A DNA stretch of 64,000 bases from Penicillus capitatus (GCA_965649825.1 OZ287696.1:1460081-1524080); one strand, 5' to 3'; positions 10,746-35,660 are shown, counted from the stretch's first letter. Notes: generated by a model not told the origin, from the sequence alone. Numbers and translations are program-made.

Positions 10746-11005
10746 TGCTTCGCGGTGGAACGTTTGCGAGGAGGGTCTCGCTAATTGGCTCCATTTACCT
10801 GCTTCCGGCAGCAAAGCACTTTTCTTCTCCTCAATTGTGCTTAGGAAGCCTTATCTGGCGCATGTCACCAGTGGCAAAGTACACCTCAGCGATTGGAGAA
10901 GCATTGACTTGATATTCGGAACTGCAGGATATTTATTCCGTGTAACTGATAGTGTTAAGGTGATTCTGCGGATGCAGTCTTCCTGTTAAGAGTGCTTATT
11001 CCGTG

Positions 11006-11630
11006 TGTAAAAGAATGGCGCGATTCTGACAGAACGCTGATGGGACGGCCATGTAATAAGTGGCATTACTGGCACTAAGTGTTTGTCGCGTCTTTGGCTG
11101 TGCGACGTAACCGTCGCTGCTGAGTCGCACTGACTAGGAAATGAGGCGTAGTGACTGGGCGTGAGTTCTTATGAAGTTCACATTGAACTTCATGGAACGT
11201 TCTAGAACTTCACCAGGAACTCACTCTTGAAGTTCAGCTGATTTTCCTGTCGTCACATCGGGGTCGGAGTATTTAAGCAAGGTTTCGACGCATAAAACAT
11301 CTTTCGATTGACACTTAAGTTCCTTTGGTACTGGTGAATCACATACACTCTGTTTACATCTTCTCAAAACATTCGCTGTCTACTTCTCAGTTGTAACAAG
11401 TTGTCTCTTGGCTGCAACCTCTGAACTCCCCAAAACGTCGCTAACCCCTCAAGAACCGCTCATCACTCATTCCATTTCCAAGACTTCCGCTGCGCTTGTG
11501 AAATGAGTCATTCCGGAGACGTCGAAGGCCCGGTCCTGCCGAGTGTGCCGCCACCACCCGTCCACAAAGTAAGGGCGGAAGACATCGTGACGGAGGTCGG
11601 CAAGAAGGCCGGGAAAGATGAATCTTCACA
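11006..11630 (+). repeat. 5' LTR (625 bp)
   Basis: Runs TGTAAAAGAATGG...GAATCTTCACA; no mismatch with the 3' copy seen by eye. Confidence 0.97.
11161..11236 (+). promoter_or_regulatory. LTR U3 enhancer cluster: heat-shock element plus GAA/TTC palindromes
   Basis: gGAAc-gTTCt-aGAAc at 11194-11208, perfect inverted repeat ATGAAGTTCA-CAT-TGAACTTCAT at 11171-11193, and TATA-like TATTTAAG at 11270-11277. Confidence 0.55.
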
Positions 11631-14580
11631 TGGTTTCGGAGCTGGGTCGAGTCGCGACGTTCAGAGAACCGCTTCAGAGATTCTAGCCGACCCAGAGCAG
11701 CAACGACTCGCCGAAGAAGCCCGGAGAAGAGCGCTGGAGCACGGCCCGCATCCACGACCTCGGGCCAGACCAGCGCCCGTGCCCGAAGGGAGAGGCCCTC
11801 GTATGGAAGAGCTTGCTATTGGCGCTACCATCCTCTGCGTCTTCGGCATCTTCTGGGATTGGGCATGGGGCAGCACCCTGCGTACCGCGGCATTCATTGC
11901 ACTAGTCGTCCTCCTCACGTGCGCTTACAAGTATGACTGGTTCGCACGTTTGGGGAAGTGGCTGTCGGAAAACGCCACGAAAGCGTACAACGCGCTGCAA
12001 GACCTCGGGAGGGATGAGCTGCCAGAACGACCTGACGAAGGTCCCTCCGAAGGAGACAACCCAAGGCCCCGAGGACGGCGGAAGACAAGCACGATTCTCT
12101 GGATTACCTTTTTCGTGTACCTATGCCTCTTTCCAGTCATGCATGTGGCCGCCATCCGGATGTTCGGCATGCCATATACGATGGAGGAACGCATTGAGCG
12201 CCAGTTCTCTGCGTTCGCAACTAAAGTCGAAGACCTCGCGAATTGCCCCCTGGGCGAGCGACTGGTAAAGACCTGGATGCCCACATTGTATGGCTGGCGC
12301 ACAGAGTGTCAACCGCTCATCTTCGACCTAGACGAAAAGGTCCTGCACGCCGCGTTCCAGGAAGCCGCCAAGGAGATCTACGCTGGATACCTGGGAGTGA
12401 GCCCGCGTATGTATCGGAATCGATCACTGGTGGACATAGCCAACGATGCCCTCGAATTCTCCAGGCGTTGGGGAGAGAAGGCCGAACGACGCGGACAACT
12501 CGCCAGGGAACAGATGGACAAGCTGAAAGAACACTATGAGCAAGCCCTGACGAGAATGCACCGGCGGCGGGTGACGGGCTCAGCCTGGCACCACAAGTTT
12601 ACACTGGCACCCCCGTCTTCAGCTGAGGCTGGAACCACGTCCTTCCTCACGGGGACAACCCGCGCCGTCAACCAGATCAATCTCAGCATCCTACAAATGG
12701 CTCGACAAATGACGGACGAAGCTGACGAAAGAGGATGGGAAGTACTCCAAGTCATCGACCGAGCTATCGCTAGGGCAGCACAGGACGGCGTGAACGCAAT
12801 CAAGGGGCAACTGCAGGGTGAGCTGGGGGCAGTCCGAGAACTCATGCCAACCGTTCTTGAGCAAACCAGGAAGCTTGCGGCAAGCGCAGATATGATAACC
12901 ACCTTTACTCGCTCGGTCCAGGCGCCACCTACAAGAACGTGGGGCGCATGGGCTGCAGGATGGTATGGGTTTGTCGTGAGCCCAGCGCACTGGGCGGTGG
13001 GTCTGCTTCGGTTCGTCATAAGTCCAAACATGGTCGATGGCCTCCAGGCCCTCCTCAGCATTAGGGCCGCCGGAAGCAACCAAAACCTCGGACTGATCCT
13101 GCTCGTGCTGGCCTTGGTAGGGATTCTCATGACGTTGGCTTTGATCGCCACCGTGGTCAAGAGGATCGCAGACGGAGTTCATTCGGTCGTCGACCTCGGA
13201 CAGGACACTATGCGCAGCATTTACAGCCTGACGTGGGGCACTGCTGCAGTCCTTTACTTCCCCTTCTGGGTCGCTTACTGGCTCATTGTCCAGCCACTGC
13301 TCTTTATCGGAAGCTTCATCTCCCAACAGCGAGCACAACCAATCCCGGTACCGCCACCACAAAGACCTCGCAGGGCTCGGACAGCTGCTGCTCATCAAAG
13401 CCAGCAGAGGGAACAACAGCGAGGCGGACAGCAGCCAGCGACGCAGCCAGCACCACAAAGTGCGGCACCCCGTCAGGAAGCCAACATGGCACCACCGCCA
13501 GCACCTCCAGCGGCACCACGTCAGGAAGCCAACATGGCAGCACCGCCACCGGCACCACCAGCGGCCCCCTCCCCCACCGTCCCGCAAGGAACCCACGAAA
13601 GAAGAGGTCAAGGAAGAGGCCACCAAGGGCGTGGGAGAGGTCAAGGACGCCGAGGACGCGGCCGAGGACGCGGTCGAGGGCACGGAGGCAGGGGAACGGG
13701 ATACAACTCGGATGAAGGGCAGCCACGACAAGCTGCTAGACCCTTTATCGCATGGGAAGACCGACCAGCCAGTGACGGGGAAGCAGACGAACTCCCGCAG
13801 GCCCCGCATCCGGTCGTTCTCCAAGGCCTGGGAAGTATCGAAAGCATACTGGATCGACTCCATCGCGTAGAAGAGCGACAGGCAGCCGCCGCAAGAGGAC
13901 AACCCCCGCCCATGATCAGGCCGACAATGCCCAGACCCCCCTCTCCCGGACCATCAAGAACGCCACGAATGGGTAGGCCCGCCGTACCGGCGATACAGGC
14001 CTCGCGGCTTCCACCACCAAGACGATGCGCAAACTGCAATGCCCGAGATCATGCAACCGGAGAATGCCCACACTTCTGGCAGCAAGTGGTGCACGTCCCG
14101 GAAGAACAGCAACGAGCGCCAGACGAGGGACCAAGCGACAGGCCACCAGTGGCAGCGGTATGGGACGCCGCCACAAGTAGTGACCCATCGCGTCTCTACT
14201 ACGTACGCGCCAAGCTGGCCGAGGGGGCTAGTCCAGTCCAGATGCTTGTGGATTCAGGCTCCTCCGTATGCGTGATGCCCACGGAGCGCTGCATACAAGG
14301 CGGTTGGGAGATACAACCCCTCCCTGAGCCCATGGAAGTCCAAGCATTCAACGGTGTGACAACTCAGGTTCGAGGCCGAGTGGGCCTCCCAGTGGACATC
14401 GGCGGAGAGACAAGACAAGTGCCGTTTCTCGTGGTAGACGGGCCCGAGCACCCAATCGTCGGCGTGAACGCTCTGCGAGATTTCGGCTGGAGTTTGGATT
14501 TCGCGGGAAACCGGCTCGTGGCCCCGGACGGGCGCTCAGTTATGTGCGCGGCAGTACGGGCAGCGCACCACCCAAACTGA
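11503..14580 (+). CDS. Retroelement ORF1: polytopic membrane protein + CCHC zinc knuckle + retropepsin protease (gag-pro position)
   Basis: 1025 aa. About six hydrophobic segments, Pro/Arg-Gly-rich regions, CANCNARDHATGEC (CX2CX4HX4C) and the protease motif MLVDSGSS. The ATG lies inside the 5' LTR. Confidence 0.9.
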   Translation: MSHSGDVEGPVLPSVPPPPVHKVRAEDIVTEVGKKAGKDESSHGFGAGSSRDVQRTASEILADPEQQRLAEEARRRALEHGPHPRPRARPAPVPEGRGPRMEELAIGATILCVFGIFWDWAWGSTLRTAAFIALVVLLTCAYKYDWFARLGKWLSENATKAYNALQDLGRDELPERPDEGPSEGDNPRPRGRRKTSTILWITFFVYLCLFPVMHVAAIRMFGMPYTMEERIERQFSAFATKVEDLANCPLGERLVKTWMPTLYGWRTECQPLIFDLDEKVLHAAFQEAAKEIYAGYLGVSPRMYRNRSLVDIANDALEFSRRWGEKAERRGQLAREQMDKLKEHYEQALTRMHRRRVTGSAWHHKFTLAPPSSAEAGTTSFLTGTTRAVNQINLSILQMARQMTDEADERGWEVLQVIDRAIARAAQDGVNAIKGQLQGELGAVRELMPTVLEQTRKLAASADMITTFTRSVQAPPTRTWGAWAAGWYGFVVSPAHWAVGLLRFVISPNMVDGLQALLSIRAAGSNQNLGLILLVLALVGILMTLALIATVVKRIADGVHSVVDLGQDTMRSIYSLTWGTAAVLYFPFWVAYWLIVQPLLFIGSFISQQRAQPIPVPPPQRPRRARTAAAHQSQQREQQRGGQQPATQPAPQSAAPRQEANMAPPPAPPAAPRQEANMAAPPPAPPAAPSPTVPQGTHERRGQGRGHQGRGRGQGRRGRGRGRGRGHGGRGTGYNSDEGQPRQAARPFIAWEDRPASDGEADELPQAPHPVVLQGLGSIESILDRLHRVEERQAAAARGQPPPMIRPTMPRPPSPGPSRTPRMGRPAVPAIQASRLPPPRRCANCNARDHATGECPHFWQQVVHVPEEQQRAPDEGPSDRPPVAAVWDAATSSDPSRLYYVRAKLAEGASPVQMLVDSGSSVCVMPTERCIQGGWEIQPLPEPMEVQAFNGVTTQVRGRVGLPVDIGGETRQVPFLVVDGPEHPIVGVNALRDFGWSLDFAGNRLVAPDGRSVMCAAVRAAHHPN
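11631..11642 (+). promoter_or_regulatory. Primer-binding site (tRNA-iMet-like)
   Basis: TGGTTTCGGAGC directly follows the LTR end and differs at 2 positions from the plant-type iMet PBS TGGTATCAGAGC. Confidence 0.7.
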
Positions 14581-14611
14581 CTGCCCCCTCCAAAAGCCAC
14601 GGGAGGGGCGG
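14571..14611 (+). promoter_or_regulatory. -1 ribosomal frameshift signal (slippery heptamer + stem-loop)
   Basis: C CCA AAC immediately before the ORF1 TGA, then a 7 nt spacer and stem CCCCTCC (14585-14591) / GGAGGGG (14602-14608). The -1 frame continues as PKLTAPSKSH in pol. Confidence 0.8.
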
Positions 14612-17405
14612 CACTGTTCGCGTGCACCAGCAATGGGAGATCAAGGACGGAACGGGAATCTCAGTCACTCCAAAGGGAGTCCAGCTGCAAAGTGGAAAGC
14701 CAAGATTCTTGCCGCCAAAGACTTGGGAACGCTGGTACCTCCCGTGGAAGCTAGAAGTAGAAGGCGGCGTCACCATAGCTAGCTGTTTTCAGCGACCCGA
14801 GGTTCTGTCTGGAGTAGTAGTAACCTCTGGAGGAATGGTACGATGTGAGGTCTACAATACGTCAGAAAGAGTGATTCGAGTCACTCCGACCACGCCCCTC
14901 GTTTCTTTGCACGGACACAGCAGCATTGAGGTAGTCCGGCTAGCCAAGATCGGCTCAGTCGCCGTTGACACCCTTGCCGAGTCCCTGCGAAACGAGCTAG
15001 CGCGTCGTTTTCCTGACGTCAGCGACCTAAGCCGGCACCCTATCGTGCCCGCCATGGAGCCCCTTCGAGTCAGAGCCGACGAAGTCTGCTGGACCCCACC
15101 TAGAGAGCAAGGATTGCGCACATCATACAAGACAGAGCAAGTCGCCGACCGACGTAAGATAGCCGAACAGCTCGAGCACTATGTGCGGCGCGGCTATCTG
15201 CGACCGGTCTCCATGAGTGAGCGAGTGGCCTTGAGCCCCCTGTACCCCATCCCCAAAAAGGATGGCAGCTACAGGTTCACCAACGACTTTCGTTGGCTGA
15301 ATGCTCACTTTAAGAAGCATGGAATGACCCAGATCGACGTCTGGCGGCGACTATGGGATGTGGATCCAGCCTGGCGATACTTCGCCAAGCTGGACCTCAA
15401 GGACGGCTTTTTTGCAATCCCGGTATGCCCAGAGCTGCAGACTGCGTTCGCGTTCACCTGGCAGGACCGCCGTTACGCCTGGAAGCGCCTGCCGCAGGGA
15501 TGGTCATGGAGTCCGATCCTCTTCGCGGAGCGGGTAGCAGAGATTGTACAGGGGCTCGGCGCGGTGCAGTATGCCGACGACCTCCTTGTCGGTGGTACCA
15601 CCCCAGAAGAACTCTGTGACCGCGTCCGCAGCATTTTTGCTCGCTTCCAGGAGTTCGGTCTCAAGGTGAATCTGGCCAAGACGGAGCTTCTGCTGACAAA
15701 GGTCAGATTTCTGGGGATGGAGCTGTCGCACGGGTCATGGACGCTCACGGACTACTTCCGTAGCCGCTGGGCGCAGCTCGGAGAGGTGACGCACTGGAAA
15801 GATCTTGAGCGCCTCGTCGGAGTACTCTCTTATCTGAGGCGAACCATCGTGGATCTCGAGAGACTCATAACCCCTCTCCGTCAGCTGCTTGCGGAAGCTA
15901 AGGCAAGAAAGCAGAACGATGAATGGTGGAACCAAGCCCGACAGAAAGTCTGGGAAGTGCTGCTACGAGCACTCGACCGACAAGTACTGCTCGAACTGCC
16001 CGGTCTCCAGACAACACAGTACATCCTCGAGACAGACTGGTCAGGTGAGCACGCAGGGTACCTGCTATGGGCCAAGGGGTCCCACCACGAACACCTCGTC
16101 GACCTTGGAAGCAAGAGCGTGCCAGAGACGACCTCTTCGTTTCTCGGCGAACTCAAGGCGATCGTGTGGGCCTGCCAGACAACGAAGCCGCTACGAGGCG
16201 ACCTCCCCCTGCTCATCCGAACGGACAATCAGGCCGTCGCCGAGCAACTGGCTACGACCACGCCGAGTCTCAAGGACAAACGTGTCATGCGCCTGCTGGG
16301 GTGGCTCCTAGGAAATGAAAACTTCACCGTGGAATTCGTCCCCGGGGCCGAGAACCGGGGCGCAGACCTCTTGTCCAGGCCTCGTAAGGGAAAGGGTGTG
16401 GCCAAAGTGTTCCAGACGGAGACAGGTCCGACGCGGAATCAGTTGGAGCAGATCAAAAAAGCCCATCGAGGACATTTCAACTGGCAGACGACGCTGCGAA
16501 ATCTCAAGTCAGCAGGCGCGGATTGGCCTGGGATGCGGGCACAGGTGCGACGATTCGTCCAAGACTGCAGGCAGTGTCAAGGCTACGGCCGACCCGTCCA
16601 GAAACCGGTCTGGGGCTCATGGGACTGTCCCCGCCCCAACGATACGGTCTTTTGCGACTTTCTTGGGCCACTACGCTGGGAGAAAGGGGAAGACGACGTA
16701 CACGTATTCCTCATGATCGACGGGTTCAGCCGCTACGTCATTCTCACCGCCTCAGCAGGGCCAACGGCCGAGGCAGCAAAGGCGGGCCTGCGCAAATGGA
16801 GATACCGCTTCGGGTCACCTCGCCGATTGGTGAGTGACCAAGGCGCCGCCTTCGTCTCCATTGACTTTGAGGAATACTGCAGCCGGCACCGTGTGGAGAT
16901 GGCACTATCCCCGGCCTACGCCCACTGGAGTAACGGAATGGCCGAGCGAGCCATCGGCACCATCCTGGGTCGAATCCGAAGAGAAGGCCCGAGCGCACCA
17001 TGGCCGTCGCTCCTCCAGCGAGTCGAAGCGGCGTATAATGAATCATGGCACTCGGCGCTGGGGTACGCTCCAACTCTTATCATGACGGGAAAGCGACCCG
17101 ACGGCACCCAGCTCCCGGAGGCAGAGCTCGAAAGGATAAGAGAAAGAGCCTGGAGACGCTCGGACGACCAACGGCGGAAGCGAAAGGCAAGGCACGAGCG
17201 AAGCGTCCCAACGAGGCGAGAACTGCGAGTCGGAGACGAGGTGGCCCTCCAAGTGCAGCGCCCTGAAAACAAGCTTGCGCCGCAATGGCACTTTGGCTGG
17301 CGCATACACAGGATGCTGACTCCGCACCTCGTCGAAGTCGAGACCCTGGACGGCAAGACGCGCAAGTCCTGTCACGCGCATCAGCTGCGGTTGCTGCGCG
17401 GATAA
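14571..17405 (+). CDS. pol: Retroelement ORF2/pol: dUTPase-like domain, reverse transcriptase, RNase H, integrase
   Basis: RT: LDLKDGFF, LPQGW, YADD. RNase H: ETDWSG, ELKAIV, RTDNQA, ADLLSR. Integrase: HRGH..CRQC, FCDFLGP, VSDQG, SNGMAER. No stops. Confidence 0.95.
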   Translation, partial: PKLTAPSKSHGRGGTVRVHQQWEIKDGTGISVTPKGVQLQSGKPRFLPPKTWERWYLPWKLEVEGGVTIASCFQRPEVLSGVVVTSGGMVRCEVYNTSERVIRVTPTTPLVSLHGHSSIEVVRLAKIGSVAVDTLAESLRNELARRFPDVSDLSRHPIVPAMEPLRVRADEVCWTPPREQGLRTSYKTEQVADRRKIAEQLEHYVRRGYLRPVSMSERVALSPLYPIPKKDGSYRFTNDFRWLNAHFKKHGMTQIDVWRRLWDVDPAWRYFAKLDLKDGFFAIPVCPELQTAFAFTWQDRRYAWKRLPQGWSWSPILFAERVAEIVQGLGAVQYADDLLVGGTTPEELCDRVRSIFARFQEFGLKVNLAKTELLLTKVRFLGMELSHGSWTLTDYFRSRWAQLGEVTHWKDLERLVGVLSYLRRTIVDLERLITPLRQLLAEAKARKQNDEWWNQARQKVWEVLLRALDRQVLLELPGLQTTQYILETDWSGEHAGYLLWAKGSHHEHLVDLGSKSVPETTSSFLGELKAIVWACQTTKPLRGDLPLLIRTDNQAVAEQLATTTPSLKDKRVMRLLGWLLGNENFTVEFVPGAENRGADLLSRPRKGKGVAKVFQTETGPTRNQLEQIKKAHRGHFNWQTTLRNLKSAGADWPGMRAQVRRFVQDCRQCQGYGRPVQKPVWGSWDCPRPNDTVFCDFLGPLRWEKGEDDVHVFLMIDGFSRYVILTASAGPTAEAAKAGLRKWRYRFGSPRRLVSDQGAAFVSIDFEEYCSRHRVEMALSPAYAHWSNGMAERAIGTILGRIRREGPSAPWPSLLQRVEAAYNESWHSALGYAPTLIMTGKRPDGTQLPEAELERIRERAWRRSDDQRRKRKARHERSVPTRRELRVGDEVALQVQRPENKLAPQWHFGWRIHRMLTPHLVEVETLDGKTRKSCHAHQLRLLRG

Positions 17406-17634
17406 GACGCCAGGTGGCGGCGCTCAGCGGTTACTGGCGGATAGTTCAGAATCCTATGGAATTCGCAACGGTTGGCGACGGGTATGCATTTACGCAGAAG
17501 AGTTCTCGGTGGTTGGGTGTCAGCTTCCCCCAGCGGGGCGAAGCTCCCGACGGATGCCGTGAACTTCGAGTAAACCATAGGATAACCACCAGTCAGAGCG
17601 CGCTCTGGACACGCGTCCCTGGAGGTTACGTGGG

Positions 17635-17642
17635 TATAAAAG
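17635..17642 (+). promoter_or_regulatory. Candidate internal TATA box for ORF3
   Basis: TATAAAAG 44 nt upstream of the ORF3 ATG, preceded by the 14 bp palindrome CAGAGCGCGCTCTG (17594-17607). Confidence 0.5.
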
Positions 17643-17678
17643 GACCGTCCGCACCGGGATTTCACCATTCGCTCGCAC

Positions 17679-18674
17679 ATGTCTTTTGTCTTGTTCAGCT
17701 TCTTCGCGCTTGTTCTTGCCGTCATCCTGGTCGCTACTTCGTGGACTGCGGTGGCGCAGGAGTTTTGCATTGGCTTCACAGTGTTTTTGGCGTTTTGCCT
17801 CCTCGAAGCTTTGGTCACATTCACCATGAAGAGAGAGCGAAGCTCGTCAACCTCGGGAGAGGACCTGACGCAACTCACCAGCCTCCGCCGCGTGGCCCCG
17901 GCCTCCTCCTCGGAGAGCCTGACGCCCGCAGCGGAGCATAGCATGGCGGAAGTTAGGGAGCGCTGTCGTTCCCTGACTCTGGCCGACCTAATCGCTGAGA
18001 TTGACAGGCGCCTCGAGGAGGGGGCCGGGACCACACGGACGGTGATGGAGGCCCCCACGAACACGACTCAACCGAGGAACGAGGCACCGCAACAAGGCCA
18101 ACGCGGAAGAAGCCGCGGGAGGCAAGGGGCAAGCTCCTCCCGACAAGGAAGGGGAAACCCTCCACCGCCCCCTCCACCGCCCGGGCGAAGGCCCCCTAGG
18201 CCAGCCTCTCCCCGAGACGTCCCGCCAGTGCCCGCTCTCTCGCGTCGGAACCCTGGACCACGCTACATCGTCGCGGGGGAGCTCGGGGAACTCGCTCTTC
18301 CACACCGATTCCTCGTGGATCCCCAGCTCCCCGGGCACGTGGTGGGACGGAGGACGGCAGAACTCCTCGGCCTTCGCATTCGCCCCGTCCACGGACCGCC
18401 CCCACCTGGATTTGGGTTTACGGCAGAGGTGGTACGGGAAGACGGCGGGACAAGCGAAGTAATCGGACATGCATCGGCTCGGGTGAAGATCGGGTACGAG
18501 TTCCACATTCTGGATTTTATGGTGGTGGCCGACAGAGTGGAGACGAAGCTGGGACCGGAGGTGATGCGCCCCTTCCGCCTTCGAGGCGACCGAGTCAATC
18601 GCGTACTCTACCAATCCGAGACCTCTCGGATCGGAATCCCGGATCCACGAACGGAACGCAACGTCGCCCCCTAG
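17679..18674 (+). CDS. Retroelement ORF3: membrane-anchored protein with degenerate retropepsin-like domain
   Basis: 331 aa. Two N-terminal hydrophobic helices, Arg/Gly- and Pro-rich regions, and a C-terminal domain that aligns by eye to the ORF1 protease but has FLVDPQ instead of MLVDSG. Confidence 0.8.
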   Translation: MSFVLFSFFALVLAVILVATSWTAVAQEFCIGFTVFLAFCLLEALVTFTMKRERSSSTSGEDLTQLTSLRRVAPASSSESLTPAAEHSMAEVRERCRSLTLADLIAEIDRRLEEGAGTTRTVMEAPTNTTQPRNEAPQQGQRGRSRGRQGASSSRQGRGNPPPPPPPPGRRPPRPASPRDVPPVPALSRRNPGPRYIVAGELGELALPHRFLVDPQLPGHVVGRRTAELLGLRIRPVHGPPPPGFGFTAEVVREDGGTSEVIGHASARVKIGYEFHILDFMVVADRVETKLGPEVMRPFRLRGDRVNRVLYQSETSRIGIPDPRTERNVAP

Positions 18675-18801
18675 GGGCCATCGCTCTTCTACTGTTTTGT
18701 TGCTAGGTTTAGGCATTGGGTGGGTTTTCTTTCGCTTCGTTGGCTTGCACAAAAACGCAAGCCACATCGGAGTTCACGCAACGGGAATGCGGGTGCGCCC
18801 A

Positions 18802-19426
18802 TGTAAAAGAATGGCGCGATTCTGACAGAACGCTGATGGGACGGCCATGTAATAAGTGGCATTACTGGCACTAAGTGTTTGTCGCGTCTTTGGCTGTGCG
18901 ACGTAACCGTCGCTGCTGAGTCGCACTGACTAGGAAATGAGGCGTAGTGACTGGGCGTGAGTTCTTATGAAGTTCACATTGAACTTCATGGAACGTTCTA
19001 GAACTTCACCAGGAACTCACTCTTGAAGTTCAGCTGATTTTCCTGTCGTCACATCGGGGTCGGAGTATTTAAGCAAGGTTTCGACGCATAAAACATCTTT
19101 CGATTGACACTTAAGTTCCTTTGGTACTGGTGAATCACATACACTCTGTTTACATCTTCTCAAAACATTCGCTGTCTACTTCTCAGTTGTAACAAGTTGT
19201 CTCTTGGCTGCAACCTCTGAACTCCCCAAAACGTCGCTAACCCCTCAAGAACCGCTCATCACTCATTCCATTTCCAAGACTTCCGCTGCGCTTGTGAAAT
19301 GAGTCATTCCGGAGACGTCGAAGGCCCGGTCCTGCCGAGTGTGCCGCCACCACCCGTCCACAAAGTAAGGGCGGAAGACATCGTGACGGAGGTCGGCAAG
19401 AAGGCCGGGAAAGATGAATCTTCACA
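18802..19426 (+). repeat. 3' LTR (625 bp)
   Basis: Copy of 11006-11630, followed by TSD CCGTG. Confidence 0.97.
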
Positions 19427-21171
19427 CCGTGTTTACAGTCTCAATCGCTTGTCCATATTTGCGCGGTTTTTTTTTCACTTCGAAGTGTGAGTTGCATAAG
19501 CCTTAAAACCGAAGCATTCATTTGCCAGTTGTGTTGTGCAGCGAGTGACCCATGCATGCGATGCCATCATTCTTGCGATGATGACACACAACCTATGAAA
19601 AGTCTGTTCCGACAAATTCAGTCAGGGAATAATACGTTGGCAAACCAGAGTGTATGAAAGATTTGCCACAAAACATCTGTTTCATTAAACAACTTTCCCA
19701 CTGAAGGTGAACAAAGCGATAGACCTGCGATCGTTTTCTGTGAAAAGATATTCGCTCACAGAGCCACAGAGTTAGCCAGCTCATGATCATGGGCAACGAA
19801 GAAGTAGAAGCCGTCAAGACTGCCGAAGTTAAGAAAAAAAACAACGGCTGTAGCACGGATCGTCTTTGAAAGCGACCTTGAAGCAGGTCAAGGAGAACAG
19901 CCTCGCCAAGTCGAAAAGAGAAACGAACACGGTCTTGGTTTCTGAAATGTGGGAGTGTTACAAAGCGGTACTTCCAGAAAGGTATCGCAAAGTCGATCTC
20001 GACTGTCGCATTCCGTGTTACGTCAACCGGCATGTTTTTCCTGAAGCGCGTCTGTCGCGCCACGAAGAACTACGACATGACGCTCATGCGATAACGTACG
20101 TAATTGCCGTCCGTTGATCGGACACAGGAACGATCGACGTTGCTCGACAGTGCTGGTCCACAGACAAAGACGTGCGGGTTACAAAGCCGAAGGACGCTTG
20201 GCTTAAAAACTGAGTCATCGTCACGTCACGGCGAAAGAGACGTTTGAGTTTTCATCACCCCCGCATGATAGTGTCGGAAAGTATCAGAACAGAGATTTAC
20301 AAAGACGAAGAACCGTTCATCAGCAACGGCCATATATCAACAAATTGAGGCGACTCATTCATCTAAGTCAAATCAAAATGACACCTACACGACAGAGTTA
20401 TTTCAGTTTCCGCTGACGCAGTTCATAGTCACGCAGTTTGACATTTTTCTCATATAACCGACGACGATAATCATTGGACCGGCATGTTAAGAGGGTGAAT
20501 TCTTTTGCTTGCTCATCCAACCACTAGTGAATAGCACAAAGACCTGTTTTGCTTTCCTGAGTTCTTTTTGACCGATATCTGCTCGTATAACACTGAAGTC
20601 GACTAGAAAACGCATAACACCAAGGATCGGTCTGTCGGAGAACGACGTAATATCTTTCGCTTTTGGCATAAAAACAAGTTCTGCCAGGTTTGCTATTCGC
20701 CCCTACGTGCATACAGGCTCTCTATATTCTTTCGTCACAGCAGAAAACATGCAAGTTACTTTATCGCATAAGCATCAGTGGCAGCAGAACCGCGTGACTG
20801 TTTCGGTACAATATGCCGTGTCGGAATCTGAAAGAGCGCTGTCGTTGTAGAGAACTACTCTGAGTGAGCCTCTTTTCAAGGTTTTGCGGAGAATACCTCC
20901 TACAAGTGAGGAATTTGACCGACGTACATAGACGGACATAGTGATCTGACGGCTAAGTCACATCACCTCTGCGCCTCACTGAGGGTGTTTTGTGCAGGAA
21001 CTGCAGAGAAGGAACGAAGGGACCCGTGGAACATAAACACTACTACCACGGCGAGGAACGTGAAAGTGCGGATCTCGCCTCCAGTCGAAAACGGAAGAGG
21101 GAGAGTTGTTGGATGCGTCAAATGGTTTCGCCGTCGAAATTTGAAGAGACCGAACGCTGATGTTGACTCGA

Positions 21172-31041: not shown

Positions 31042-34000
31042 TTAGTCAGAAGTTTCAAAGTCGTCAAGGACTTGACGTGTGTCAAGGTAACGCTCAAGAA
31101 GCAAATCTGTGCTGCCAACAATGGCCACAAGTTCGCCCGTCTCTCTCGTGTTCTTCAAAATGGACGTGTAACTCTTTTCCCCGGAAGCTTCGATCAGTAC
31201 AGAGCGTAGACGCGCAATGTATCCACTGTCAGCTTCTCCTTGCGTCAAGATGACATCTGTTGGCGTCAGGCCGAAGTTACAGGTTTTAAAGGAATTGAGC
31301 TCTTGGCACTCGCGTTTGTGCGAACAGATGAGTTGCAGTCCATCTGTGAGTTCTTCATCTTCCAGGACAGTGCTGTCTGTCAAAGCAATGCCCCCTTCGT
31401 TCTGTTTTAGGCATTCAATGGCACCGGCAGGTCCATAGTAATCGTCATCGAGTCCACATTCGTCTTCGCATGCTTCGCAGAGCGTTTCTGTTGCATCGGC
31501 GGCGCTTTGGTCGTGCGGCGCACAGATTTTCCCAAAGAAACTGTTGGCGCTCTCGACAGCTTTGCTCGGCTCTTCTGTATCTTCCTCTACTGTAGAGAAG
31601 AACCCTTGTTTCACCATGACACTGACAGGAGTCTCCCATCCAGAATCGCTCCCATAAAAGGGAAAGCACGCAGATTTGCCTTCGAAGTCGGTGATATAGA
31701 TTTTCTCTGCACACGTCTCCGATTCCACGACGGCCACACTGTAAACAACCGTTTCCTTCTGCTTACCAATCGCTTCGGCGGCGACCATGGCGAGGTTATA
31801 AGATTCGAATCCTTCGACAGCTTCTCTGGGAGAAGCGGACATGAACTGAGAAGTGCCTTTCTGCACGGACGCGTAGCACTCTTCAATAGAGTCTTCCCGA
31901 CGACAGTCCCACAAATAGCTTGACTCAATCTCCTCATAGATTTTCAGATTCTGCATCACAGTGACTTTAGAGAACAAACACGTCGTAGAGTGTATCACAC
32001 CTCTAAGCATGCGTCGAGTTGATCTTCAGTGAAAGCGCAGAAGGTTGCCAGGTTGCCGGGATTGAATCTCTTCTCCCCTTCGATGAGACGATCGAAAGCA
32101 CTGAGTGCTTCATCTGTCTCTTCTGTGATGTAGCCTGTCCAGCCGCCATCGATCACTTCCAATCCTTCTGCAGAAATCGAAAATGGAAAGTCGTTGATGA
32201 AGCCGCGTGCTTTGTTGAAGAAACGAGGTATGTCGGCGGCATTGCCGATACCATTCTTCACCACTCTTCCAACATCCCATAGAGAACCCGTCTCACCGAG
32301 AGCGGGAGAACCGATGAGGGCATGACTCGGAGCCAAAGCTAAATGGCAGCTTTCGTATTCGTCGATATCGGCACAGCCTCCATCTCTGCACAAGAGTTTG
32401 AAATCTGATGCCGGTTTGGTGGCCCAGGCACGGAAGACTTCATCGACGTTTCCATCACTTGCATAATCTCCCACAGTGCTGTGCTTCACAAAGGCAACAT
32501 CTCCAGCTTCTTCCATGAGACATCGGAAGGCGCCGTCGTAATCATAGTACTGATCATTGGTTAAGCAATTCCCTTTGCATCCCGAGCAGAGATTGTCCCA
32601 TAAGCTACCGGATCCATCTTTCGTGTTGCGCGGCCCGTTTCCGCTGATGCGAGGTGCACATGTCGTTTCAAAGAAGTTGGCGACGAGCTCAGCATCGTCT
32701 TCGATGGTTCCTCTGCGCCTCGTGCCGTTGAAGGCCTCCACTTGAGAATAGAGGACGCCGACCGGAATTCTCCACCCGGCCATCTTGCGGTATCCCGTGT
32801 GACAGGAACGCATGCCTTCTAGATCGGCCAGCGTTACTTCATCCTCGCAGAAATCGGCGTTCACAACGGCGACACCATAGTAGTTACCCTCTCCTCCAAT
32901 CTCGCCAACCTCTCGGACAAGAGGGACGAGACCAAAGGCGTGATGCGCTCGATAGGCATCGCCGCCGTCTAGGGACGTCAGATGGGCCTCGCCTTCGTAC
33001 AACATGCGCATGCAAGTCTCGGCCGTTTCTCCGACGACGCACTCAAAATTGATGCCGGTGATATCGGCTGCATTGAAAATGCGACTGCACTCGGCGCTGT
33101 CTGTGGAGCCCGCCATGAAAGGAATACAGACAATGACCTCTGTTCCTTTCGGCGCAGCAAGTTTCTCCAGCCCTGCGTAGGCGGATGCAGCTGTTCCGAG
33201 CAAATCTTCGACGTCATCTTCGAGTTCCACGAATTTTTCCACGCCACTGCTGAAGATGTGGTTTTCTGGATTCGAATCTTCATCCAGCACAATATCCGTA
33301 AAGTCTTCCATTTCCGTTAGATTCATGATGGCAGACTTCAAGCGCGTCGCATAGCTGGGAACATTACGTACGATCACCGAACGGGCGAGGACGGCTCCCA
33401 AGTTGCAGTCCTCGTATTCATCGATTTCGACGCAGCTCGGAGTCTTTGGACAAATCAGTCTATGATCATGTTCGTGTCCTTCATGATCGTGTTCGTGTTC
33501 TTCTTCATCATCATGATCGTGTTCATCATCTTCTTCTTCATCATGTTCGTGTTCTTCTTCTTCATCCTCTTCTTCGTGATCTTTGTCGAGGTCTTTGAGA
33601 ATTTCCGTGTGTTTCATAAAAGCGACCTCTCCCACTCCTTCTTCAAGGCATTCGTGTACACCATTGTCGCCATAGTAAGGACCCTTTTCCGAACAGGATC
33701 CCTTACATGCCTGACAAAGGGGAGGCCACTCCTCTGGGGAGCCACGTCGTTTGCGTTGTGGTCCAGTCTTGTCCGCATTGGGTACGCACATCTCTCCAAA
33801 GAACGCGGCTGCTGTCTCGGCGTCGTTCTCGACCAGGGGCTCATCGTCCTGTGGATCCATGATCTCTAGAGATGCCATGTATCCGATAGGAATTTCCCAT
33901 CCAGCTTCGTCGCCATAACTTGGGTGACACGTCGTTTTGCCTTTGAGATCGACCAGAACGGCATCTTCGTTCTCATCACAGAATTCTTTGTTCACAACTG

Positions 34001-35660
34001 CGACGGAATAGAAATCGCGTCCGTCTCCCATTTCACCCTCTTCAGCCAGAATGGCAGTGAGACCAAACGATGTGTATGCAGCGTAGACATCCCGTCCTCG
34101 TGCGGTCATCCAATCGGCGTCTCCGTCAGCTATGGCCCTTGCACAGCTGTATGTCGTATCTTGCTGCAGACAACCCCACTCCATCTCCGGAATCAGCTCA
34201 TTCGCAATAACCGCCATCTAAGAACCACTCTTTACAGAAGATCTCTGCCCCTATTATACAAACCTTTTCGCATAAGCTGAGCTCGTCCTTGGACGTCGCA
34301 CAGTAAATGGCCCTTTTATCATTTCCCTTGGCGTTTATCACAAGATCATCAAAGGCTGTCCAACAAATCCGCATCAGTCGTGATCTCAATGTAGACAACT
34401 GGGCTCACCGCGGAAGACATGTAGTGACTCTTCTGGCAAGTAACCTTCCATGCCATTCTCAACAGCTTGCAATCCTATCGTACCGTCAGACCACAGAAAA
34501 TTCGGTGTCAAGCCGCGCGATTCATCGAGGAAATCCGTGTCGTTGGCAGCTTCCATAATGGCGGCTTGTATAGCAAGTCCTGTCTCTTCATCATCGCCTC
34601 CAACTCCCAAATCTTTGCTCGTGACCAAAGCATGCCCAGGAGCTAAGGCGAGATAGCATTCTTCAAACTCCCCAACTTCCATGCAGCCGCCGCCGGGGCA
34701 GAGCAGTCGGAATTCGTCCATCTCCTTGTCTGACCAAGCGCGATTGACTTCATCCTCCGCCCCGTCGAGTGCATACTCCAGAACAGTCGAGTGCTTGACG
34801 AAGGCAACATCTCCCTGTCCCTCCACCAAGCAACGAAAAGCGCCAGAATAGTCATAATATTGATCATTCGTTGTACAGTCTCCTTTACAGGCAGAACAGA
34901 GTTCATCCTCCCACAGCGCCCCTTTGCCGTCTTCTGTATTGACTGGACCGTTTTGACTCGTTCGTGGAGCGCATGTTTCATCAAAGAAGGCCGCGACAAG
35001 CTCGGCATCGTCCTCGACGTCTGGATCCGATGGTGAAGTATTGAAAGCCTCGACGTTTAGCAGCAGAGTGCCCACAGGAGTTTTCCAACCGGCCTGCCAC
35101 GACAGAGCATTCAGGTGGCGATCGCGCCATGATGGACTGCTTACAGATTTTCGGTATCCTGTATGACACGAACGCATGCCTTCCAAATCGTCCAACGTTG
35201 TCGAGGAATCGCAGAATTCCTAAGACCACTACATCTGTGCCAGAAATGCCGCTGTCTGTTCTTACCCTGTTCACGACAGCCACGGCATAGTAAGTGCCTC
35301 CAGGAACGCTGCCTGCTGATTTTTCCACAATCAGCGGTTGGATCTCGTAATCTCTGTTGGCGCTGATAACATCCGAGCCGTCCAAGGTTGTCAGGTGCGC
35401 GTCGCCACTTTCGAGTTGTTCGACACACTAAGGGTCGCATCTTTGAAAGAGACGGTTTTGGAGAAATTTACTTCTGCGACGCCGCCGCCTTCGACACATT
35501 CGAAAGTCAAGTCATCCGTATTTGCCAATCCCACAGCTTTGGTGCATTTGTCGAGGAACGACCCGCTTTCGCCGTCTTCATAAGGAACGCAGATCTTGAC
35601 AGTTAAGGACGACACGGAGGAAAATCCCAGACACAAAACAAGCACGCTTATCCAGTGCAT
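31042..35660 (-). CDS. Secreted four-lobed transferrin-like protein, multi-exon
   Basis: Signal peptide MHWISVLVLCLGFSSVSS and four transferrin lobes with Y.VAVV, SCHTG/TCHP, GAFRCL and DVAFVKH-type motifs. Confidence 0.88.

Follow-up and report, generated by a model that had tools for sequence, protein, structure and literature searches.

A gypsy-like LTR retroelement whose gag-position ORF is predicted to encode a membrane protein fused to nucleocapsid and protease

According to the ICTV profile of the Metaviridae, gag comprises capsid and nucleocapsid, and env, if any, lies downstream of the integrase (PMC7879559). The stretch of DNA analyzed here (64,000 nt, referred to as the window) contains an LTR retroelement in which the ORF in the gag position had been described, from the sequence alone, as a polytopic membrane protein fused to nucleocapsid (NC) and protease (PR). 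This raised the question of whether such an element may work on membranes in place of a capsid shell.

We found that the focal LTR retroelement is complete (11006-19426 of the window) and that its ORF1, pol and ORF3 are all intact. The focal locus is an autonomous gypsy-like LTR retroelement that was inserted very recently. Its borders and its first and last ORFs are:

11001-11005, plus strand: target-site duplication, 5' copy (CCGTG; the same 5 bases border both LTRs)
11006-11630, plus strand: 5' LTR (625 bp, TG..CA ends; 100% identical to 18802-19426)
11503-14580, plus strand: ORF1 (1025 aa, intact), comprising membrane module, linker, NC and PR
11631-11648, plus strand: primer-binding-site position TGGTTTCGGAGCTGGGTC, within ORF1 and directly abutting the LTR end
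17679-18674, plus strand: ORF3 (331 aa, intact)
18802-19426, plus strand: 3' LTR (625 bp, TG..CA ends)
19427-19431, plus strand: target-site duplication CCGTG, 3' copy

The ORF1 start lies within the 5' LTR, 128 nt upstream of the LTR end, and the frame continues through the candidate primer-binding site. A TATA-like motif (TATTTAAG) was found in the 5' LTR near 11271, and the ORF1 start is the first AUG 3' of this motif; in the ATG map of the 5' LTR, no ATG was present from 11195 to 11502, a stretch of about 310 nt upstream of the ORF1 start. The translation of the candidate primer-binding site, HGFGA, recurs in six elements (the focal element, L001, L002, L003, L008 and L012). In Ty1 (Pseudoviridae), too, the gag ORF has its start in the 5' LTR and spans the primer-binding site; unlike the focal element, Ty1 shows the domain order of copia, and its Gag is a normal one that forms a capsid. 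At the position of the polypurine tract, the 20 bases upstream of 18802 are only partly purine-rich (GGGAATGCGGGTG...). The 64-kb window contained no tRNA gene, and no cognate tRNA was matched to the candidate primer-binding site TGGTTTCGGAGCTGGGTC. The host is an intron-poor microbial eukaryote.

We then analyzed ORF1, in which the following parts were distinguished:

11812-11931, plus strand: hydrophobic hairpin, aa 104-143 (hydropathy; missing from the L002 family)
12091-12156, plus strand: anchor helix, aa 197-218, with the basic cluster PRPRGRRK just upstream
12157-12948, plus strand: predicted luminal or external helical domain, aa 219-482 (hydropathy, low-confidence models)
12949-13323, plus strand: conserved membrane core, aa 483-607 (hydropathy, alignment across elements)
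13324-14007, plus strand: low-complexity Pro/Ala/Gln and RG-repeat linker, aa 608-835
14026-14067, plus strand: CCHC zinc knuckle (nucleocapsid), aa 842-855, C-x2-C-x4-H-x4-C
14191-14508, plus strand: retropepsin, aa 897-1002 (Pfam), with the active-site DSG at aa 917

The sequence-only reading had counted about six hydrophobic helices in this ORF. Using a Kyte-Doolittle threshold of at least 1.6 in a 19-aa window, we found five hydrophobic segments (aa 104-122, 123-142, 195-223, 523-559 and 583-607), and a weaker, Trp-rich segment at aa 483-505 brings the number to that count. In 300 shuffles of ORF1 the mean number of segments was 0.54 and the maximum was 4, and the hydropathy peak of 3.08 in aa 523-559 compares with a shuffle maximum of 2.47. 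The membrane core consists of the Trp-rich pre-TM segment, the strongest TM helix (aa 529-552), which is followed by K/R, and a second hydrophobic helix (aa 583-607). These results supported the view that the gag-position ORF combines, in a single protein, a predicted integral membrane part with NC and PR.

The orientation of this protein was deduced from hydropathy and flanking charges, which suggest that aa 219-482 lie in the lumen or outside and that the NC-PR tail is cytosolic. Because hydrophobic helices bracket the helical domain and a conserved Cys pair lies inside it, the domain would be on the non-cytosolic side. The pair, C248 and C269, flanks a predicted beta-hairpin, and the domain also has N-x-S/T sequons at N306 and N393. 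The layout of hydropathy, charge and Cys residues fits a pattern of signal/anchor, ectodomain, TM helix and cytoplasmic tail, as far as hydropathy-based assignment goes. The span count is approximate, and one or three spans may follow the helical domain; with an even number there, NC-PR would end up on the wrong membrane side. The domain of about 250 aa had been called helical or coiled-coil. Its helical character was retained in two low-confidence models: model 1 predicted a helix of 58 aa and a pair of 34+62 aa, and model 2 made this pair a single helix of 100 aa. As to a coiled coil, the crude heptad score of the focal ORF1 (0.72) did not exceed the 95th percentile of shuffles (0.73); the score was higher in L001 and L006.

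The C-terminal part of ORF1 agreed with the earlier description of Pro-rich and RG-rich stretches, one CCHC knuckle at about aa 842 and a DSG retropepsin at aa 917, as judged by motif and Pfam searches. The linker has, over aa 611-835, residue fractions of 0.19 for P, 0.15 for R and 0.12 for G, and contains a 48-nt tandem duplication (13462-13557); in a PDB sequence search its RG stretch gave only low-complexity matches, to the tails of S10 and SmD1. The Cys and His residues of the knuckle are invariant across three family members, and Pfam zf-CCHC was at threshold in the relatives L004 and L007 and was not reported for the focal ORF1. The protease was recognized by PF13975 (aa 911-992, 33.5 bits, cut-off 28.2) and PF13650 (30.1 bits, cut-off 24.3), and matched the PDB entry 'retroviral-like aspartic protease 1' with an E value of 1.6e-4.

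The end of ORF1 is followed by pol in the -1 frame, as the sequence-only reading had it:

14544-17405, plus strand: pol frame, intact, -1 relative to ORF1
14571-14577, plus strand: -1 slippery heptamer C CCA AAC, abutting the ORF1 stop (14578-14580)
14581-14611, plus strand: GC-rich stem-loop, putative frameshift stimulator, beginning 3-6 nt past the slippery site
15249-15725, plus strand: RT (Pfam RVT_1, 1.8e-25)
15927-16376, plus strand: RNase H (Pfam RNase H-like)
16431-17402, plus strand: integrase zinc, core and C-terminal parts (Integrase_H2C2 2.9e-8, rve 1.7e-12)

The same arrangement was found in relatives of the element. Of the 11 elements, the ten whose nucleotides were read (all but L010) carry CCCAAAC or AAAAAAC close to or at the ORF1 stop. 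The eight elements checked for frame all have an open pol that is -1 relative to ORF1, and among the eight that were folded, most have a predicted hairpin at the same post-heptamer position, its sequence differing from element to element. The heptamer, the hairpin and the -1 pol frame have the design of a programmed -1 ribosomal frameshift site, which could yield ORF1-Pol chains. The Pfam domain order is PR, RT, RNase H, IN, and the PDB matches of pol are the RTs of foamy virus, Ty3 and MLV and the IN of PFV.

A search for relatives, which the sequence-only reading had proposed, returned ten related elements from several metagenomes with the same layout; the membrane module, the knuckle, the protease and the -1 pol are common to all. 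The membrane core could be aligned over the 11 elements and the mosaic protein P0048. In this 12-sequence alignment, the TM helix carries an Asn in 8 sequences, and the second core helix has a loosely conserved (L/S)P-hydrophobic motif. A signal-like or anchor segment equivalent to aa 197-218 is present in L001, L003, L004, L006, L007, L008 and L013. We found no published description of a layout in which a membrane module takes the place of the capsid, in line with the earlier reading, which knew of no described lineage with this layout.

The sequence-only reading had also noted no capsid or major-homology-region signature, and none was found by Pfam, PDB profile search, phmmer or Foldseek. 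Pfam detected no capsid or gag family in the focal ORF1, and no gag or CA family at E values up to 10 in six members; PDB sequence and profile searches of the focal ORF1 yielded no significant capsid match. When ORF1 was searched with phmmer against 1.84 billion representative proteins, the only matches were ORF1s of sister elements, and no host homologue of the module was found. The comparison of the helical domain with capsid and fusogen folds, proposed in the same reading, gave no Foldseek match and no significant PDB profile match, for models of low confidence. The two models, built on three-row alignments, had mean pLDDT values of 48 and 50; they contained helices 58-100 aa long and no capsid-like bundle, and Foldseek found no capsid-like or other match for them, with nothing at E < 0.1 in PDB and BFVD. 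Since the models are of low confidence, aa 219-482 of the long-ORF1 family may still form a very divergent capsid fold. The best argument for a capsid-less state is comparative, and comes from three relatives with short ORF1s: L008 with 437 aa, L010 with no more than 475 aa and L013 with 538 aa. In none of these does any unassigned soluble part exceed about 110 aa, and they leave no room for a capsid domain. No recognizable gag was present in any relative locus fetched.

We consider it somewhat probable that ORF1 encodes a membrane-anchored Gag substitute with NC-PR(-Pol) as its cytosolic tail, and that a membrane-bound compartment replaces the capsid shell. The ORF1 protein would enter the ER or a secretory membrane, with aa 219-482 facing the lumen or the outside and the linker-NC-PR(-Pol) tail facing the cytosol, and clustering of the membrane modules would gather the tails. 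NC and the RG tract would bind the element RNA and its tRNA primer, the slippery site and the hairpin would send a fraction of the chains on into RT-RNase H-IN, and the protease would dimerize and then cut. Reverse transcription would take place in a membrane-bounded or membrane-attached compartment in place of a capsid shell. We infer that packaging on or in membranes, vesicles or spherules or in enveloped particles, as suggested by the sequence-only reading, would be topologically coherent; the compartment may be intracellular or may be released as an enveloped particle, between which the sequence does not discriminate. We know of no LTR element shown by experiment to function in the absence of a capsid shell.

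The released form can be taken further, to an enveloped, capsid-less retrovirus-like agent in which aa 219-482 would be a true envelope or fusion ectodomain. Such an agent would bud away from the cytosol and enter other cells, with NC, RNA and Pol on the inner tails of its particles. Its topology would be the same as in the membrane-anchored model, with the ectodomain outward on the bud, and the Cys-bracketed hairpin, the very long predicted helices and the Trp-rich segment adjoining the TM helix are consistent with it. Influenza HA2, in its long-helix region, is among the top PDB profile matches, at non-significant E values of 0.02-0.5. Envelope genes are often fast-evolving and swapped as cassettes; the membrane module is likewise fast-evolving in comparison with NC-PR (identities with L001 of 52% and 86%, respectively), it has been exchanged as a cassette between sister families, and the pol lineage is scattered across unrelated metagenomes. 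However, the ectodomain has no significant similarity to a known envelope protein or fusogen by sequence or fold (Pfam, PDB profile, Foldseek), so that the Env-Gag fusion of the sequence-only reading is not supported, the heptad signal of the focal ORF1 does not exceed that of shuffles, and neither a cleavage site nor a fusion peptide was identifiable in ORF1. Moreover, a search of the IMG/VR viral contigs returned no relative, and the copies seen are chromosomal insertions with target-site duplications. We judge an infectious agent of this kind unlikely. On the other hand, the same region could be a highly diverged cytosolic capsid domain of an ordinary Gag, tethered by hydrophobic segments that substitute for the matrix domain. 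Gypsy-type capsids often escape sequence detection, the region is helical throughout, with a length close to that of CA-NTD and CA-CTD combined, and the models are too low in confidence to decide against this explanation. It is nevertheless improbable, because the predicted helices are 58-100 aa long, as opposed to the short helices of capsid domains, the bracketing hydrophobic helices and the conserved Cys pair point to the non-cytosolic side, and Pfam found no gag family in the six members searched. In L007, L008, L010, L012 and L013 the equivalent region is at most about 100 aa, while the membrane core, NC and PR are kept.

An equally improbable explanation sees in the membrane module an accessory or captured component, with a possible role in targeting, host interaction or regulation, rather than a scaffold; the capsid function would come in trans from other elements or be unneeded through another replication route. 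The capture of extra ORFs by LTR elements is known (PMC5408684, PMC7264820), and several families (L001, L002 and L004) coexist in one assembly, ERZ26696514. The module, however, is in frame with NC-PR in all 11 elements, which come from different samples and span a range of pol identity between 86% and 29%, and the lack of both a recognizable gag at the fetched loci and a host homologue also argues against this explanation. Finally, ORF1 could be soluble, with its hydrophobic helices buried and no membrane span, given that the membrane call is based on hydropathy. This is very improbable in view of aa 529-552, a stretch of 24 aa without charged, polar-amide or Pro residues, and of the hydropathy peak above that of every shuffle; hydrophobic segments are found at comparable positions in all relatives, and the short relatives have signal-peptide-like N-termini.

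A broader form of the membrane-anchored reading is more tentative, and we regard it as rather doubtful: a deep clade of elements in marine and other microbial eukaryotes may have dropped the capsid, with a membrane glycoprotein-like module building the compartment or particle and NC-PR-polymerase as its tail. If true, this would be a clade without the capsid protein that unites all Ortervirales, one that reached the form of an enveloped retrovirus-like agent independently and with no capsid.

The focal element resembles Ty3/gypsy (Metaviridae, Ortervirales) in its LTRs with TG..CA ends, 5-bp target-site duplication, primer-binding-site position starting with TGG, PR-RT-RNase H-IN order, CCHC knuckle and retropepsin, and its pol matches Ty3 Gag-Pol with an E value of 1.7e-26. 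Unlike Ty3/gypsy, it has no detectable capsid, and a predicted polytopic membrane module lies upstream of NC in the same frame. Among solved structures, those nearest to the focal pol come from foamy viruses, namely PR-RT with an E value of 1e-35 and the PFV integrase with 4e-19; Ty3 ranks behind them, in a PDB ranking that is not a phylogeny. Foamy-virus budding needs the envelope glycoprotein and not Gag alone (PMC7828637). Unlike the focal element, foamy viruses have a capsid-forming Gag without a CCHC knuckle and a separate env. Bunyaviruses have no matrix or capsid shell, and the zinc-finger cytoplasmic tails of their Gn contact the ribonucleoprotein and drive budding. The likeness of these tails to ORF1 is a functional analogy only, as no sequence or fold relationship was found by PDB profile search or Foldseek, and bunyaviruses, unlike the focal element, are RNA viruses without reverse transcription.

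Gypsy-like elements that carry env (errantiviruses, Athila/Tat, Odin and others) are also LTR elements encoding a membrane protein. Their env is a separate post-pol ORF and their gag a normal capsid-NC, whereas in the focal element the gag-position ORF itself encodes the large predicted membrane protein. The focal ORF3 occupies the post-pol position of env, and contains two hydrophobic helices in aa 1-51 and an RG/Pro-rich linker. Compared with the env of these elements, ORF3 is small and is not recognizable as an envelope protein; the domain at its C-terminus (about 18255-18590) is a paralogue of the element's own protease in which DPQ replaces DSG. The MDG1-group elements of Drosophila encode, besides gag and pol, a small transmembrane protein, sORF2 (PMC11952523). 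By its description sORF2 is a possible analogue of ORF3; it is short and FAST-like, whereas ORF3 has 331 aa and a degenerate protease domain.

ORF1 lies within a complete LTR retroelement, the features of which are as follows.

Features of the element (window coordinates; amino acid positions refer to ORF1)
11006-19426, + strand: complete LTR retroelement, 8421 bp, enclosing ORF1
11006-11630 and 18802-19426, + strand: 5' LTR and 3' LTR, 625 bp each, 100% identical, TG..CA ends
11503-14580, + strand: ORF1, intact, 1025 aa
ORF1 aa 104-122, 123-142, 195-223, 523-559 (peak 3.08) and 583-607, + strand: hydrophobic segments (Kyte-Doolittle)
ORF1 aa 483-505, + strand: weaker Trp-rich segment
ORF1 aa 611-835, + strand: Pro/Ala/Gln-rich linker with RG repeats
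ORF1 aa 842-855, + strand: CCHC knuckle C-x2-C-x4-H-x4-C, Cys and His invariant in the family
ORF1, DSG at aa 917, + strand: retropepsin, above two Pfam cut-offs
14544-17405, + strand: pol, intact, -1 frame
17679-18674, + strand: ORF3, intact, 331 aa

The 5-bp duplication CCGTG flanks the element on both sides, and the G+C content is about 0.60 in the element vs about 0.50 in the flanks. Neither a second copy nor a solo LTR of the element was found within the 64-kb window, and no tRNA gene was found there. The neighbouring genes are eukaryotic and nearly without introns (PUF, Ufd2 core, transferrin, lipin, adenosine deaminase and NuBaID). The transferrin-domain protein (739 aa; Pfam 2e-91) is encoded by a host gene at 31995-34217 on the minus strand; the host genome has few introns and about 50% G+C. 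A long ORF of 403 aa (12691-13902, minus strand) runs antisense to ORF1 in the GC-rich element. Another ORF (17285-17941, plus strand, 218 aa) was rejected as a gene, since it overlaps the end of pol and the start of ORF3, has no family match, and has no counterpart among the called genes of the relatives. Both ORFs are probably by-products of composition.

Hydrophobic segments were defined by a Kyte-Doolittle score of at least 1.6 in a 19-aa window. In 300 shuffles of ORF1, the top peak was 2.47 vs 3.08 observed, and the number of segments averaged 0.54 with a maximum of 4, vs 5 observed. Residues 529-552 contain no charged, polar-amide or Pro residues. The sequence-only reading had reported such membrane-type segments in the gag position, followed by a CCHC knuckle near aa 842 and an intact DSG retropepsin at aa 917, and all of these were recovered. 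Among PDB entries, 'retroviral-like aspartic protease 1' was a further match for the protease. The RG stretch matches the tails of S10 and SmD1 in the PDB search by low complexity only. The Pro-rich linker also carries a 48-nt tandem duplication (window 13462-13557, copies 88% identical), which encodes the unit A-A-P-R-Q-E-A-N-M-A... twice.

Searching with pol, we found a lineage whose identities range between 86% and about 29%; some of its members have a dUTPase inside pol. The loci of ten relatives from other samples were compared (L001, L002, L003, L004, L006, L007, L008, L010, L012 and L013). L001, L002 and L004 are from one shared assembly, other than that of the window, and the compared 300-nt LTR stretches are identical in each; L003 is from Logan, and L006 is from a JGI marine sample. 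The locus search with the pol alignment matched two metagenome loci and found no locus in IMG/VR. In the gag position, all ten relatives encode strongly hydrophobic segments and, after them, a protease; in eight of the ten a CCHC knuckle lies between the two (none was detected in L010 and L012). The layout, for which the sequence-only reading knew of no described lineage, is thus not a one-off. Except for L012 ORF1, which is split over two frames by one break, all ORF1s read were open.

The membrane core (ORF1 aa 483-607) could be aligned across all elements. It opens with a Trp/Phe-rich segment, in many cases closed by DP or SP, and continues into a TM helix in which 8 of the 12 aligned sequences share an Asn. 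A short loop then leads to a second helix, where an (L/S)P-hydrophobic motif is loosely conserved. Between the first anchor and the core, the helical domain measures about 260 aa in the family of the window vs only about 100 aa in L007, L008 and L013. P0048, a mosaic ORF1 protein found by phmmer, is 64% identical to the L002 family vs 22% to the window in its N-terminal membrane half, and 91% identical to the window vs about 47-51% to L002 in its NC-PR part. These mosaic identities indicate that the membrane module has been swapped between sister families as a cassette.

We then considered where ORF1 starts. Its ATG, at 11503, is still inside the 5' LTR, 128 nt upstream of the LTR end. A TATTTAAG motif occurs in the LTR near 11271, and no ATG is present between 11195 and 11502; 11503 would therefore be the first AUG of a transcript beginning after this TATA-like motif. 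From there, ORF1 reads through the primer-binding site (PBS) position at 11631-11648 (TGGTTTCGGAGC...), directly 3' of the CA of the LTR. The HGFGA peptide translated from the PBS position recurs in the ORF1s of L001, L002 and L003 and is near-identical in L008 and L012, although the ORF1s of these elements are otherwise only 20-30% identical. Its recurrence indicates that the whole clade maintains an open frame through U5 and the PBS. Ty1 gag shares this property. In L004, no Met is found close to the anchor helix, and the N-terminal extension therefore belongs to the protein in that element. On this ground, and because 11503 is the first ATG past the TATA-like motif, a start at Met101 was rejected.

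Pfam analysis of pol found RVT_1, RNase H-like, Integrase_H2C2 and rve domains in gypsy order. The nearest solved structures to pol were foamy-virus PR-RT (1e-35), Ty3 Gag-Pol (2e-26), MLV-type RT and PFV integrase. The two foamy-virus structures came ahead of Ty3, in what is a ranking of structure matches and not a phylogeny.

At its 3' end, ORF1 reads ...C CCA AAC TGA, and pol is open in the -1 frame only, both in the window and in the seven relatives checked. CCCAAAC or AAAAAAC was found at the ORF1 stop (3 nt upstream of the stop in L004), and the slippery-site design of L012 and L013 is alike. ORF1 ends at the slippery site in all nine relatives whose nucleotides were read, and the L010 protein terminates in the same ...KN peptide. 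Of the eight elements folded, most have a GC-rich hairpin, with its own sequence in each, that starts 3-8 nt downstream of the slippery site; L013 folds differently. The whole-segment z-scores of 72-nt stretches ranged from -0.4 (window) to -5.1. The ORF1/pol junction is, in design, a predicted canonical -1 frameshift site, in keeping with the -1 frameshift of the sequence-only reading.

No capsid was found in ORF1, in agreement with the earlier observation. The protease was the sole Pfam family in the protein, and when six family members were searched at E up to 10, they had no family in common and no gag family match. A profile of the membrane-plus-helical region gave nothing significant against all PDB sequences. 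The best of the non-significant hits were HscB (0.008) and, at 0.02-0.5, the long-helix part of influenza HA2; hits of this sort are what helical, coiled-coil-like composition yields. Homology to HA2 was rejected, since the E-values were not significant and the likeness is typical of such composition. Using phmmer with aa 100-620 against 1.84 billion representative proteins, we found only ORF1 itself and two sister-element ORF1s, and word-indexed homologue searches with aa 100-620 and with the six-member alignment returned no match. Since there were no host homologues among the 1.84 billion representatives, a captured host gene was also rejected as the origin of the membrane module.

Two AlphaFold2 models were built from three-row alignments (mean pLDDT 48 and 50). 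At this low confidence, both models predict a helix, then a beta-hairpin bracketed by the conserved C248 and C269, and a short helical region; these are followed by helices of 58 aa and of 34+62 or 100 aa. Foldseek comparison of both models with the PDB and BFVD gave no match below E 0.1 and neither a capsid nor a fusogen, but models of this confidence give the result little weight. The crude heptad score of the window ORF1 was not above that of shuffles, so the coiled-coil character ascribed to the helical domain by the sequence-only reading was not borne out.

A basic cluster, PRPRGRRK, precedes the ORF1 helix 197-218; K/R residues follow the TM segment 529-552, and R/Q/P-rich sequence follows 583-607. 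The 219-482 domain holds a conserved Cys pair and two N-x-S/T sequons. These features fit a topology in which the N-terminus would be cytosolic, the 219-482 domain luminal or outside, and the linker-NC-PR(-Pol) tail cytosolic, on the side on which RNA is present. Such a topology requires one or three spans within aa 483-607. Judged from its coding sequence, the recently active element joins a membrane protein, NC and PR in a single polypeptide, which would be extendable by -1 frameshift into RT-RNase H-IN.

We lean towards a membrane module that serves as a replication scaffold in place of a capsid. The module would substitute for the capsid by concentrating NC, RNA, primer, protease and polymerase; the protease would be activated after clustering, and reverse transcription would proceed in a compartment attached to or enclosed by a membrane. 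If budding is directed away from the cytosol, internal spherules, intraluminal vesicles and released enveloped particles would all have the same topology. A released, fusogenic enveloped particle would fit this topology, and we regard it as unlikely. That the hydrophobic segments do not span membranes is the least credible alternative, as both their peak and their count lie beyond all 300 shuffles.

A hidden, membrane-tethered capsid might be sought in the long helical domain of the window's family. The short ORF1s of L008 (437 aa), L010 (at most 475 aa) and L013 (538 aa), which have signal-peptide-like N-termini, have a longest unassigned soluble stretch of about 110 aa, and therefore no room for a two-domain capsid protein. 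We consider such a capsid quite improbable. An accessory membrane module, with the capsid supplied in trans, would keep a capsid in the replication cycle; given a module present in every relative compared, we find it just as improbable. The interpretation in the sequence-only reading is borne out in part: the anatomy, the frameshift design and a lineage-wide conservation stand, whereas the capsid-less state and the membrane mechanism are inferred.

A capsid-nucleocapsid Gag is regarded as the structural hallmark that LTR retroelements and retroviruses have in common, and the ICTV profile describes gag as capsid plus nucleocapsid and places env after integrase (PMC7879559). In its LTRs, pol order, NC and PR, the window element resembles gypsy elements. 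However, when the ICTV capsid criterion (PMC7879559) was applied, no capsid was found, and the element is therefore not filed as a canonical Ty3/gypsy member. While Env-bearing gypsy-like elements have a normal gag and a separate env, the window element has a membrane module in the gag position. Foamy viruses, which provide the nearest pol structures, have a capsid-forming Gag, whereas none was detected in the window element. Bunyavirus Gn tails carry zinc fingers, and their likeness to the ORF1 NC tail may be one of functional analogy only. In the literature searched, which did not extend to subscription-only papers, we found no account of NC-PR fused to a transmembrane protein in the gag position.

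A conserved, recently active lineage thus keeps NC, PR, RT, RNase H and IN, with an integral membrane module where the capsid belongs and a protein family that has no relatives outside these elements among the 1.84 billion representatives. If the proposed scaffold is true, reverse transcription and integration would be organised without a protein shell, and the lineage would provide a natural example of membrane-scaffolded retroelement replication. It would also offer a new angle on the gain and exchange of envelopes and structural modules in this virus order.

ORF3 begins with two hydrophobic helices, followed by an RG/Pro-rich linker. Its C-terminal domain (~18255-18590) is paralogous to the retropepsin of the element (BLASTP 28-29% identity, E 4e-5), with DPQ in place of DSG, and is conserved in L001-L003. 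ORF3 would in effect be a membrane-anchored pseudo-protease.

L007 belongs to the dUTPase lineage, a sister lineage (~44% pol identity) in which a dUTPase/DCD domain lies inside pol (P0017-P0040; L007:7001-10345). In this lineage, ORF1 has five CCHC knuckles, and ORF3 is an acidic, soluble protein of 516 aa with no family match. The contigs of L007 and L008 were assembled as tandem or 'circular' repeats with units of 9210 bp and 6624 bp, respectively, which could stem from multi-copy elements that were collapsed or from circular forms of DNA in the samples.
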